NCBI GenBank assembly: GCA_965637545.1
Contig: OZ281499.1
Span: 10,168,001-10,232,000, forward strand
Source: Phallusia mammillata
Lineage: Eukaryota
Length of the DNA: 64,000 nucleotides
Reading direction: 5' to 3'
This document shows positions 7,480 to 40,000 of the stretch, one piece after another. Within the stretch, counting starts at the first letter, position 1. The number at the start of each line of letters is the position of its first letter. The position numbers and the translations under genes are program-made. A model generated the notes under the pieces. That model was not told the DNA's origin, searched no databases, and saw only the letters and a program-made list of their open reading frames with translations.

Positions 7480-10400
7480 ATGTACGAAAACGTCGCAAGC
7501 GTGCAAAGCAGAGGTTCCATAGGTAAGGGTTTGTTGACAAAAACAGACAGAAAGACTTAACTTTGTTTGTTAGATTTTGAAAGCGAATCCGGAAAGCAAA
7601 CTTCACACGAGTCAGGCATTTTTGCACAACTATTAATAACTTTACTGCTGACAGTTCTTGCGGTTGCCATCAGCGTTGGATTCGGAATCGAAATGGTATT
7701 TTAATTTGTTATCTGGCTATAAGGATTTTTTCATTTATTTTTTATGCTTGTTTTAGAAAATTTTCATTAAGGGGTTAGTGCCGTTAAAAAGATGATCACA
7801 AACTTTTTCAACCAATAATCAAGATTAATTAAGCTTATTAGTCAAAAACATAACCCCTTGAAACACGTATTTAGAGTAGGTGTAAAACTGTGTTCCAAAT
7901 CTTCACTGTTCCCCATTAGGTGGAAATACAGAGAGTGGAAGAGATGTCTATATCAAGTGTTGAAGGTATACAGTGTATATCGTAAAATAATTGTCTATAA
8001 GCAGCATATTTTACAAACATTCAGATTATTCCTATATTTTAAAGATTTTCACCAAATCGAGTCCGGCTCTTGCACTAGCCCAACATTTAAAGATTGCAAA
8101 GACGCCTTAAGTCAAGGTTACAAATTCTCAGGCCGTTTTACAATTAAACCCAATGCCAACACTTCGTCCTTTCAGGTGATCTTTCTTTGTTTGCTTGTAC
8201 GTTCATTTGGTGCTATATATATTTTTTGATTTCAGGTATATTGCGACATGTCTTCTGATAGTGGTGGTGGTTGGACGCTGGTAGCTTCAATTCACGAAGA
8301 CGATGTATGGAGCTTAGGTTCCGGAGATATGTGGACATCTGGTTGGTTTTGAAATGTTTTCAAGTAATTTAAACTAAACTATTGTGATAATGCAGCGTAC
8401 GACAACTGGTTTAATCTGCTAACGTTTGGCAAACTGGAAGATGTAACTAGTGCAGATTTTAAAAGCAAGGCCTTGTACGCTCTTAATGTAAGTACAACAA
8501 AAACATTTTCTTTGTATAACTATCTCTACCTTAACTACCTTAGTTGTGTTGTTTGTTGCAAACTGTCCAAACTGTCATCACATAAACGTTTGCTGCAATC
8601 AAACTCAAGGATATAAAATGCAATAATAACTTATTACAAGATAATAGTGTACAGAAACCATTGGTTTGTGGTGCATTAACTCATCAATACAGTTTTCGCA
8701 GGCCTCGGACATGATGGTATGGCATGTGCCTAATGATCTGGGACTATCATCAATTTCAAACGGTGCATTCTTCAAATATCACACAACAAACGGTTTTCTT
8801 CAAAAATATGGATCGAATCTACAAAGTTTGTTTACGCAATACTTTCCCTTAACCCGACTTAGCAGTGAATGTCCAGACAACTTTACCAGTCATCCCGAAA
8901 GTAAATGCGCTCTTAATTCAGACATATTTCAAAAAGTGTCAGATTGTGTGCAGGAAAATGACTGGGACAACCTTTGGCGCCGTCCATGGGACGAAAACGA
9001 TCCGAGTCCAGTTTATGAATTGGATAAGGTGCGTTAATTTTGTACATCTGGCAATGTTAGCGACCGAAAACAATCCTGATCTTGCGCAGATGACCCTTCA
9101 GTTAAATTCGCAAAAGACAATGAATATAAACGAGACAGGAAGTTACAGGTTGGTCATAAATCTACTTAATTTTCTCGTTTACTTTCGTATCACTGTCCTT
9201 TCATATTACTGACCAAGTAAATAAATTGTGTATTCATTGTACACCAAATTTCCGTCTATTTTCTTACTCTTATTCTTGTAGCGTTCCGGGTTTCAACTCA
9301 ATCTTTGCTGCATCACACACAACAAGCCACGTTGCCAGCAATGTAGTTTGGATTCCGTTGCAACGCAACGCTGTTGATGTCAATGTCAAGGTTCGTGAAT
9401 GATGGTTGAACAGTACCAAGCGAAATATGGTTTGTTTCAACTTATCAGGCTAAGCCACATCATTTTGAGTTGCGCTGATTTTTAGGAGGGTGGGGGAAGT
9501 AAAATAAGCGTGTTTGGTCTACAGTGGTTCTCAAACTTTTTTTAGTTGCGACGCCATTGGAAAAGTTTTTCTGGACTTGCGACGCACCAGCAAATAAAAG
9601 TTAATGATGAAACTTATTATTAAAGTTGTGTTTATTGATACAACACCAAATGCCACGAAACGAAACTATTCTGCGACGCCCTTGAAAAACTGAAACGACG
9701 CACCAGGGCGTCGCGACGCACAGTTCGAGAACTACTGGTCTAGGACAATAAATAAGTAATTACTATTATGGGTACAAATTATGATGCTCTATTTTCGAAA
9801 TCATAGTACGCCAGGCCTAATGAAGGCGTTATACCGAATCAGCCAATCACCAAGGATTCCCATATGGCAAGGCGTAGATTAGAAAAATCTGAATTTCTAC
9901 CTTACGCCTTGCCATAAAGGACTGCTTGGTGACCGGTGATTTGGTATAACGCTTTCATTTCGCTCCCTACAGTAGCAGTTTTTCCGTGTTTACTGTTGTC
10001 CAGGGGCGGCTCGTGCTAGGGTGCTGCGGAGCTGCAGCACCCCCTAGATATTTTTACTTAATACACCTACCATAATATTACAAATAGCTTTCATTATTTT
10101 TATTTTTTTTATTCCTTAGCAATATATAATAAGCATAATTTCCGACCTAATCACCTTTTTTTTTCATTAAATTTTTTTTTTTGGAAACACTAATGTATAT
10201 CTATGCTGGAACTGCAGCTCCAGTTTTCTGACGTTTCGTGACGTTTCATGACGTTTTGCGGTTCTGCGCATGCGCACTTTGAAAAGCTACATGCTGGGCG
10301 AAATAGGAGCCAGGGTGCTGCGGCTCGCGCAGCTCCACCAATCACGTAGCGTGTGACCTGGGCACCCGGAAGTAGTTGTCTGTTCCGCGTTTATTGTGTG

Positions 10401-37011: not shown

Positions 37012-40000
37012 ATGTTTGAAAACGGCAGAGGCGAACAACATACAGGTATCATTGTTGAGGTGTTACAATCTGATGATTTCTTATACACGCTGACTTTTCA
37101 ATTTAGCACGCAGCTCTGGAAGAGGCTGTTCAAATGAGTCAGGAATTTTCTCAGTTCTTCTGATCGTTCTACTGCTCACAGTTCTTGTGGTTGCCATCAG
37201 CGTTGGATTTGGAATTGCAATGGTAAATTTAGTTTTTGTTGGGTTAATTAATACGGTATTTTGTGCTAGTTTTTTTTAAATGATTTGTAACATTTGTTGT
37301 TGTCAAAGTTAAAATGTTCAACAAACTTTCCTGTGTTCGACATGTTATGTTACAGAATAACTAGAACTGTATAAACACAACTAAGTTACTTAAGTATTAC
37401 TGAAGTGAAAATATGAGTGCGAGGTTTAAAATATGACTTTGTATTGTTAGATGGAGACACCAAGAACAGAACCAAAGAAAATGACAAATTTTGGAGGTAA
37501 GCAGAGAGAATGATTTGGTAGTTTTACTTACCGTTGCATTTAAAGTATTTACTTTTTGTAGTCCAACAGTCGATGAAATCCAGATTTTGCGGGAAGCCAA
37601 CATTTAAGGACTGCAAAGACGCTTTAAGTCAAGGCTACAACATCACAGGTCTTCTCACTATTAAGCCCAATGATTACACTTCCGAGTTTCAGGTACAAAA
37701 ATTTTGCATGCTGTTTCACCTCGGACGAACTAAACATCAAATCTAGGTATATTGCGACATGTCATCCGGTGGCGGTGGTTGGACGCTGGTAGCTTCAGTT
37801 CACGAAGACGCTATCACTGGTAGCTGCGATTCCCAAGACAAGTGGTCAAAAGATTCGACAGGGTCTGGTTAGTTTGCAGTTGCAATTTTACAAAATATTG
37901 TGATGTTTTTAAGTTCAGTTTCACGTTGTGCATTACTTTGTAGACTACGACAACTGGTTTAATCTGAAATCGTTTGGCAATTTGGAAGATGCAACGGGAG
38001 AGGACTACAAAAGCAAAGCTTTGTACGCTCTCAATGTAAGCTCAAATAAACTATTGTGTAAAGCATTTGTTTTTAATTTTTAAGCCTGTCGGTCTATCAC
38101 CGAATGTTGTCACATAAACGTTGGTAATAACTGAATTTCGCAGGCCTCAGACATGATGATTTGGCACGTGCCAAACGATCTTGGTTTGCCAGCAATTTCG
38201 AGTGGCGCATTCTTTAAATATCACACAACAAACGGATTTCTTCAGAAATATGGATCGAATCTCCAAACTTTGTTTACGCAATACTTTCCTATGACCCGGT
38301 ACAGCCCACAAGGTCAGGAAATAAGGTTTCTTGCTATATATTTTTCCCTGTTAGTCAATTAAATATTTTGTTCAGGTATGGCCGAGAAAGCGATAGGGTG
38401 TGTGCAGAAAACTGATTGGAGTGATATTTGGCGCTGGCCGTCGCAACAAACTGAACGAGTAGTTCCAGTGCAAATTACAGACAGCGACAACGTGGGTTGT
38501 GTTTTTTGATGCACAAATCTTCGGTCTATAACGCAATACTGTTTTTATACAGATGACAATTAAATTCAATACACAAAGGGCAATAAGCATTAACAGAACG
38601 GGAAATTTCAGGTTGGTTAAAATTTGTTCATTATATTGTTTTTAACAGATCGGAAAATTTCAGGTTGGTTAAAATTTGTTCATTATAGTAATTATTTATC
38701 ATTAGAAATAGACCGCATGCTTTCATAGATATTCGATTTTTACCTACGGTTGCTGAATATAAAATTGTTATTTTGTAGTGTGCCCGGACAAAAACCGATT
38801 CAAGTAGCAATGAGTAAAACACCAAGAGTTGCAACCACACTTGTTTGGATTCCAATACCATACACCATAGGCGATGCCATTGTTAAGGTATAGTTAGCCG
38901 GTAAAAGTTACTATTAAGAGCAGTGGTTCTCAAACGTTTTCCGCGTGCGGCGCATAAAAGAACTAAAATTTCCTTTCGCGGCACACTTAGCAGGTAAACA
39001 AAACAAAAGTTGTTCAAAGAATGTTAAATTACAACTTTATTGTGGTGCCTTTTATTACCAATTAGTAAAATATGAGCTGTGAAACGTTGTCATGCACACC
39101 ATTATTTCGGCATAAATTCCTAAAACACCAGGAACGGTTTGTAAATTACTTCAATAAAAGAAATATTTCGCGGCACACTTGGAAATCTCTCACGACACAC
39201 TATTGTGCCGCTACACACAGTTTGAGAATTACTGATCAAGCGAATATTAATCTATTCATACTTCGTCATTGTGTTTTCATTTGGCGCATATAGCATACTA
39301 TCTATGTCAGAGCTCTTCAATCGGGGTTCCGCGGAACCCTAGGGTTCCGTACAACCCTTTCAGGTGTTGCGTGAACTTTAGGGGTTGCACGGGGAGTAGC
39401 AATTCGAACACAAGTGATTCAAAGTATCATTGTTTTGAACAGCACTGCTCGGCTGTTACACCATTGATCAATTGTGACGTAATGAATACAACCTTGTTAC
39501 ACTCTAGCTCAGTTGCGAGATTAATGTAGAAACGACCGATCCAAATAACACGGCAATGCGTTTCAGTTAACCGTATAATTCAAGTCAACCTTTGTGATGT
39601 GCTTTGGCTGTGTATGCATCTTTTTTCTTTGATGTAGCCTACTTGTATTACATTCATTAAAATTATTTTATGGGGGTTCCGCAAAGTTTGACAAAATACC
39701 TTAAGGGTTCCGCGTCGCTAAAAAGGTTGAAGAGCACTGATCTATGTGTATAGGTGCCTAATTAAGTGAAGAAAGAAACAACAACCTATGTTTGAAACTA
39801 TAATAGGTGTAACGAGTTTATGTTTGTTCCCATTTCTTACGATAATTATTTTGTTGCAGGTTAATTGGGGAACGTTTGGCAAAAACCCTAGCTTTAGGCG
39901 GAGTTCAACGTCATACGATGACTATAACATAAAATTTGGAGCTCAGTGTGGTGACTCATACTGTAAGGTTCTTTTCATTGTAACCAATTACAACGTAAGT

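Follow-up and report, generated by a model that had tools for sequence, protein, structure and literature searches.

That an intron may be lost merely because it ceases to be spliced is a textbook possibility, of which clean cases are scarce. De-intronization, in which splicing of a whole intron is lost and the intron becomes an internal part of an exon, is predicted to leave a recognisable signature, a length that is a multiple of three and the absence of a stop codon, and among 28,256 Cryptococcus introns 0 cases were found (Roy 2009, PMC2740785). Zhu and Niu 2013 (PMC3629103) describe rare de-intronization in fission yeasts, one instance being attributed to a mutation of the branch site. 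The reverse process, intronization of exonic sequence, is represented by mammalian MsrB1 (PMC2901347) and by five cases in Cryptococcus (PMC2740785). Here we describe a window of 64,000 nucleotides (nt) from the ascidian Phallusia mammillata (GenBank assembly GCA_965637545.1, contig OZ281499.1, positions 10,168,001 to 10,232,000 of the forward strand) that holds nine tandem intelectin-like paralogs, named A to I and rich in short introns. At a single site within these genes, copies A-D have open code where copies E-I have an intron, and we think it likely that this reflects de-intronization, the ancestor of A-D having stopped splicing a short phase-1 intron that was then read as code.

The A-D segment corresponds to the definition of Roy 2009 (PMC2740785) in that it is a whole short intron in extent, a multiple of three in length, free of stops and in frame within a fused exon. 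Unlike the introns of that Cryptococcus survey it belongs to an animal, a tunicate, both states stand in one tandem array, and the peptide has long been kept. With the fission yeast cases (PMC3629103) it would share a rare loss of splicing through degenerative mutation of a splice signal; in the case described there the branch site was affected and orthologs were compared, whereas here changes at donor positions -1 and +4 appear to be responsible and the comparison is between paralogs. As in the examples of intronization, one copy has an intron and another has code at the same bases, but the direction is opposite, the outgroups here carrying the intron. The genes resemble the intelectins (human ITLN1, Xenopus XEEL and lamprey serum lectin) in exon 7 and in the family signatures, and differ from those of vertebrates in carrying an insert of ~230 residues and six exons. 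We found no paper on intron evolution in tunicate intelectins. The array adds a case to a process that is known but has seldom been documented.

Results

The site is open code in four paralogs and an intron in five

The first 169 nt of the exon in question are collinear without indels in all nine copies, and from the end of the segment or intron to a conserved CVQ motif there are two bases and seven codons in 9/9 copies. Because the 169-nt upstream offset and the distance to CVQ are equal in all nine, both boundaries coincide to the base; the positional homology of the A-D segment and the E-I intron, which a first-pass annotation of this DNA had proposed, is therefore borne out by proper alignment. 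The same annotation described in copy A a 51-nt coding segment (8871-8921) of phase 1 that begins with GT, ends with AG and encodes CPDNFTSHPESKCALNS, and all of these properties were confirmed on the sequence. It described the equivalents in B, C and D as open code without the AG, and this too is correct: at the same 169-nt offset they measure 45, 51 and 51 nt, begin with GT and end in AA, AT and AA, respectively. The extra sequence of A-D (51, 45, 51 and 51 nt) is thus in every copy a multiple of three and without stops. In E-I the obligatory intron of 59-63 nt occupies the same position and phase, as annotated, each copy having an in-frame stop or a frameshift within it. The ratio of nonsynonymous to synonymous substitution rates (dN/dS) is 0.2-0.5 in all copies, which indicates that E-I are working genes that must splice this stretch out. 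The joint chance expectation for a GT followed by the uncommon +3 C in all of A-D, together with an AG at the exact 3' edge in A, is of order 1e-3. Intron 1 of copy A is 51 nt long (7523-7573), just as had been stated; the agreement in length offered there as evidence carries no weight, since the short introns of these genes span 53-76 nt.

A protein alignment with nine outgroup proteins gives the same picture, the A-D segment being extra relative to E-I and to all outgroups, exactly at the intron site. The additional residues of the outgroups fall in a separate 7-residue gap inside the helix that follows.

Outgroup genes carry the intron

Five outgroup genes that bear the insert were aligned protein-to-locus, two from Styela clava (L001 and L008), one from Ciona intestinalis (L005) and two from Clavelina lepadiformis (L006 and L007). 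In each of the five a phase-0 intron precedes the exon that encodes ASD...WHVPN, and a phase-1 intron lies 160-169 nt into that exon, at exactly 169 nt in both Styela genes. The phases of the introns downstream (1,0,1,0,2,0,0,2,1,2,1) are the same in the outgroup genes as in E-I, save that Clavelina P0165 is without two of these introns, and the series of A-D is that of E-I and the outgroups minus the site intron alone. In a tree built without the segment, so that the trait region was excluded, A-D form one clade with support 97/94, composed of (A,C) and (B,D); E-G and H-I, the latter with protein P0107, are two further clades, and the outgroups fall cleanly outside.

With the intron present in five outgroup genes, a single change on the stem of A-D suffices to account for its distribution; outgroup gene structures and tree together show that the intron is the ancestral state and that the ancestor of A-D lost it. 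The first-pass annotation had left the choice between intronization and exonization undecided, and had suggested a gene tree with outgroup species as the means of polarising the change; done in this way, A-D prove to be a derived clade, so that the direction is from intron to code and not the reverse.

The insert-less intelectins of Ciona and amphioxus have no intron at this site. The site intron marks the 5' edge of the inserted six-exon module, the 3' edge of which is also a phase-1 intron. The insert itself, of ~230 residues within the intelectin domain, consists of six exons flanked by phase-1 introns at both ends; it is common to other tunicates (Styela, Ciona and Clavelina, with near-identical intron phases) and absent from vertebrate intelectins, and resembles the ancient insertion of a module by exon shuffling. 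Protein P0107, compared with window positions 57794-59660, is close to copy H without being identical to it and falls together with H and I in the tree; it could represent the 3' part of I that the window lacks, an allelic form, or a tenth gene outside the window.

Splice-signal remnants

Donors were scored with a position weight matrix made from 72 other donors of these genes, the source being related paralogs. The uncommon donor GTC begins the segment or intron in 9/9 copies, against 2/34 of the other short introns listed, and the likeness of the 5' ends extends further, with GTCCGGA in C and D, GTCAGGA in E and GTCGGA in H and I. At the other end the last 15 nt of the A-D segment are pyrimidine-rich and terminate in TTCAG, TTCAA, TTCAT and TTCAA in A, B, C and D. 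The length of the segment, 45-51 nt, is just under the range of the short introns in these genes.

The acceptor of copy A, with 5.1 bits, lies at the 92nd percentile of exonic AG decoys. Its would-be donor, aat|GTCCAG, with T at -1 and C at both +3 and +4, scores 0.0 bits, at the bottom of the 72 real donors and in the middle of the range of exonic GT decoys. Donor scores are 0.0-3.4 bits for A, C and D and 5.5 bits for B; the conserved donor of E-I scores 1.7-7.4 bits (7.4 in E and 4.7 in H; 1.7-4.7 across F, G, H and I). Position -1 of the donor is G in the outgroups and in E-I, except for an A in copy G; it is T in A, C and D, and A in B. The G-to-T change common to A, C and D creates a TGT Cys codon. 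At position +4 all of A-D have C. When the query contained the segment, the aligner picked a second in-frame donor, at +12 nt in F and G and at +6 nt in H and I. These were rejected for their scores of -4.7 and -6.5 bits, which no real donor is as low as.

These remnants suggest the following course of events. The ancestor of the family had, where the six-exon insert of the intelectin domain begins on its 5' side, a short phase-1 intron. Splicing of this intron would have ceased in the ancestor common to A-D, E-I still splicing it, and as the ancestral intron would have been ~51 nt long, a multiple of three without an in-frame stop, 17 extra codons would have been added to a fused exon 7. We infer that the trigger was a donor already poor in having GTC instead of GTA or GTG, followed by the -1 change from G to T seen in A, C and D and the change at +4. 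Given the branching ((A,C),(B,D)) and the G of E-I, parsimony assigns the AG to the A-D ancestor; the AG of copy A is on this account a leftover and not a new feature. Decay of the acceptor AG would have come later, and twice, in C and in the B/D ancestor, with survival in A only, and the new peptide would since have evolved as coding sequence.

Similarity between segment and intron

When the A-D segment was compared with 37 individual short introns, the E-I site introns ranked 1, 3, 4, 10 and 14, the 32 others filling the remaining places, and shuffling of the intron interiors gave z = 5.3. In global alignment the E-I site introns give the segment higher scores than do the introns of the other four positions; the excess is ~+10, and that of true orthologous introns +4 to +15. 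The synonymous divergence (dS) between the A-D and E-I clades is 1.0-1.5, at which neutral sites are expected to be 37-45% identical, and a modest similarity between segment and intron is therefore what would be expected.

The segment is retained in a mature transcript

A profile search recovered P0001, a 472-residue UniProt/nr protein of Phallusia mammillata, which spliced alignment identified as the product of gene D, with one residue different and with the segment included. Because P0001 begins at an internal Met, and the second Phallusia entry, P0107, begins in intron sequence, both look like open reading frames (ORFs) called on transcripts and not like genome predictions. Four putative RNA runs, the RNA status of which was guessed, were compared with positions 7450-9450. 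Three contigs over this interval come from gene D and match A in conserved stretches only, their overhangs agreeing exactly with D (30595-30624, 31123-31152 and 31260-31289). One contig, from run X9, extends from exon 7 of D across the former donor into the segment, in agreement with P0001. The segment is retained in the mature mRNA of D.

No contig from copy A was found in the four runs over 7450-9450, which does not prove that copy A is silent. The first-pass annotation had proposed counting reads that span or splice 8871-8921; in these runs the comparison was made and gave no A-derived contig, so that neither the spanning nor the spliced form was seen. Expression of A had also been considered from twelve putative RNA runs that contain 10-18% of the words sampled over 7400-14700, and was rejected, as none of those words lies on 7450-9450 in the four runs compared, which puts them somewhere else in 7400-14700. 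A 167-nt contig of X9 (gene D 30595-30690) has, beside its A-matching part (from 8230), an overhang that is exon 4 of D and ends at 30624, without the last 6 bases of that exon (30625-30630) and the 50-nt intron. Either this contig is spliced or its overhang is not adjacent to the match.

The segment after its probable conversion

Over the four copies the segment has zero frame-breaking indels and one in-frame deletion of 6 nt, in B. Copies B and D are ~96% identical over the segment, and their introns are 70-90% identical with many gaps. A second Cys, 12 codons past the first, is kept in 4/4 of the A-D copies. With a dS of ~0.7-0.8 within A-D, the new peptide has persisted over a long period. 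For D, an AlphaFold2 model made with an alignment of 25 sequences has a mean predicted local distance difference test score (pLDDT) of 58 and puts the segment in coil, at pLDDT < 50, before a helix; it is too poor to place the loop or any disulfides.

Copy C (window 20845-25000, minus strand) has two frameshifts downstream of an intact exon 7, for example at 22633-22777 and 21378-21416, one in the exon homologous to A 9282-9390 and the other in the penultimate exon. Its branch, at 0.56, exceeds all others in the tree, and C is probably a pseudogene.

Alternative explanations

Several observations weigh against de-intronization. Overall nucleotide similarity between segment and intron is modest, with a combined p estimated at ~0.03 when E, F/G and H/I are treated as three lineages. 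When columns are compared, the segment gives the E-I site intron a lower score than other introns of A-D do, an outcome that is a composition effect masking the signal, and at a dS of 1.0-1.5 homology along the interior of the segment is beyond proof. If length is the sole measure, the outgroups stand at least as near to A-D as to E-I. The evidence at the RNA level covers retention of the segment in D only. The outgroups are no closer than Ciona, the nearest candidates (another Phallusia paralog, or other Phallusia or Ascidia species) lying outside the sample.

The weak similarity of the interior would be accounted for if the A-D ancestor had lost the intron precisely, for example through a reverse-transcribed copy, and had then gained an unrelated in-frame insertion of 51 nt at the same spot. 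In the surveys cited in PMC3629103, introns are most often lost precisely, but the combination requires two events at the same base, does not explain why the segment starts with GTC, shares GTC.GGA, has a pyrimidine-rich, TTCAG-like end and is of intron-like length, and would have kept the neighbouring introns, although loss mediated by reverse transcription tends, according to the same paper, to take adjacent introns together; we regard it as unlikely. A little less likely again is an ancestor in which the intron was followed by the 17 codons, and from which A-D lost the intron precisely while in E-I the acceptor moved 51 nt downstream, taking the codons into the intron, which then shrank. 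The distance from the intron site to a DW motif, 20-25 residues in the outgroups, is indeed nearer to that of A-D (27-29) than to that of E-I (12). At least three events would nevertheless be needed, and nearly all of the original intron would have to have been deleted to leave the 59-63 nt of E-I; moreover, the extra residues of the outgroups align elsewhere, in the 7-residue gap in the helix, the A-D segment being extra to every other sequence, and the shared 5' GTC.GGA would be a coincidence. Intronization, with the A-D code ancestral and 17 codons turned into a new intron in E-I, draws on the Cys codon with which the segment opens in A, C and D, and which aligns with a Cys found in the intelectins of lamprey and human. 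We rejected this Cys as a polariser, as tunicate and amphioxus intelectins are without it and the vertebrate match is thus convergent; with five outgroup genes in three tunicate genera carrying the intron at the same site and phase, and A-D a derived clade, intronization is very improbable.

De-intronization could have been incomplete in copy A, as the first-pass annotation supposed when it suggested that this copy toggles a Cys-containing loop by alternative splicing. A alone retains GT together with AG, its acceptor, at 5.1 bits, resembles that of an intron, and by parsimony its AG would be inherited and not regained. The donor, however, is the lowest when set against real donors and average for exonic GTs, and the four putative RNA runs hold no A-derived contig; as a statement about copy A the toggle is unsupported, and we think it doubtful that A is still partly spliced with an isoform-dependent Cys loop. 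It is equally doubtful that copy A is a surviving transitional state, in which the 51 nt are spliced out in some tissues or conditions and the Cys loop would sit at the hinge between lectin core and inserted module. If it were, de-intronization would pass through a long-lived stage of alternative splicing.

The gene array

The window has a G+C content of 36-38% and zero N. Exon 7 alone matches the solved intelectins 7e1e, 4wmq, 6usc and 4wmo of the PDB with E = 2e-8 to 2e-5, among them lamprey serum lectin (7e1e), human ITLN1 and Xenopus XEEL. The family signatures GGGWTLVAS and CGDF are found in the array genes, and their database homologs bear the name intelectin. Judged by similarity to solved intelectins across the fibrinogen-like core, the array genes belong to the intelectin, or X-type lectin, family. 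The positions of the site and of the exons around it are collected in Table 1.

Table 1. Location of the probable former intron, the intron and the surrounding exon in the nine paralogs (window coordinates)
Feature	Position	Strand	Description
Former intron, copy A	8871-8921	+	51 nt, 17 codons (CPDN...CALNS); sole copy with both GT and AG; acceptor 5.1 bits
Former intron, copy B	17829-17873	-	45 nt, 15 codons; 6-nt in-frame deletion; first Cys replaced by Ser; ends TTCAA
Former intron, copy C	23085-23135	-	51 nt, 17 codons; ends TTCAT
Former intron, copy D	31279-31329	+	51 nt, 17 codons; ends TTCAA; kept in mature mRNA
Intron, copy E	38313-38375	+	63 nt, phase 1; in-frame TAA; single in-frame donor; acceptor 8.1 bits
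Intron, copy F	45557-45619	-	63 nt, phase 1; in-frame stop
Intron, copy G	52263-52325	-	63 nt, phase 1; in-frame stop
Intron, copy H	56854-56912	+	59 nt, phase 1; frame shifted if unspliced
Intron, copy I	62906-62965	+	60 nt, phase 1; in-frame stop
Exon 7, copy A	8702-9028	+	apparent fusion of ancestral exon 7a, intron and exon 7b; spliced alignment
Exon 7 (fused), copy D	31110-31448	+	confirmed by transcript-derived protein P0001
Exons 7a (38144-38312) and 7b (38376-38491), copy E	38144-38491	+	intron between
Shared exon start, copy A	8702	+	collinear exon
Shared exon start, copy B	18042	-	collinear exon
Shared exon start, copy C	23304	-	collinear exon
Shared exon start, copy D	31110	+	collinear exon
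Shared exon start, copy E	38144	+	collinear exon
Shared exon start, copy F	45788	-	collinear exon
Shared exon start, copy G	52494	-	collinear exon
Shared exon start, copy H	56685	+	collinear exon
Shared exon start, copy I	62737	+	gene I extends past window end

Copy A has some features of its own. At its apparent 5' end (7481-7686, plus strand) a short exon for a cytoplasmic part (7481-7522) is separated by the intron of 51 nt from an exon with a hydrophobic stretch, an arrangement which suggests a membrane-anchored (type II) lectin, not a secreted one. Near the other end (13696-13790, plus strand) it reads YGDFS in place of the CGDF(S/A) of the other copies and the outgroups, so that a conserved Cys is lost. 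The intron at 9391-12544 (plus strand) is 3,154 nt long, its counterpart in the other copies measuring 243-1,238 nt, and contains a 171-residue ORF (10467-10979) with a Cys-rich motif resembling a transposase zinc finger. Long ORFs upstream of A (4860-6520, plus strand) end in ...HRPG.KH.NADALSR, which on a reading by eye resembles the integrase of long terminal repeat (LTR) retrotransposons. A Pfam scan of the transposon-like ORFs, both upstream of A and inside its long intron, gave nothing at E <= 0.01.

In the intron that precedes exon 7 the motif tgtca.cataaacgtt is common to A (8570-8600) and E (38100-38125), with a similar motif in F and G, despite a dS of ~1. Two possible reasons are conservation of an intronic element and an earlier gene conversion of which this is the trace.

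Implications

What sets this array apart is that both states and legible remnants of splice sites stand side by side in it, with the direction of change fixed by outgroups. The change that is likely to have been causal, G to T at donor position -1, also made a Cys codon. For minigene tests of splicing, the array supplies natural templates. The general picture of intron evolution is unchanged by this case; in the intelectin-like genes of Phallusia mammillata, it shows how a short in-frame intron can turn into additional protein sequence, at a junction of domains that is likely to tolerate an insertion.

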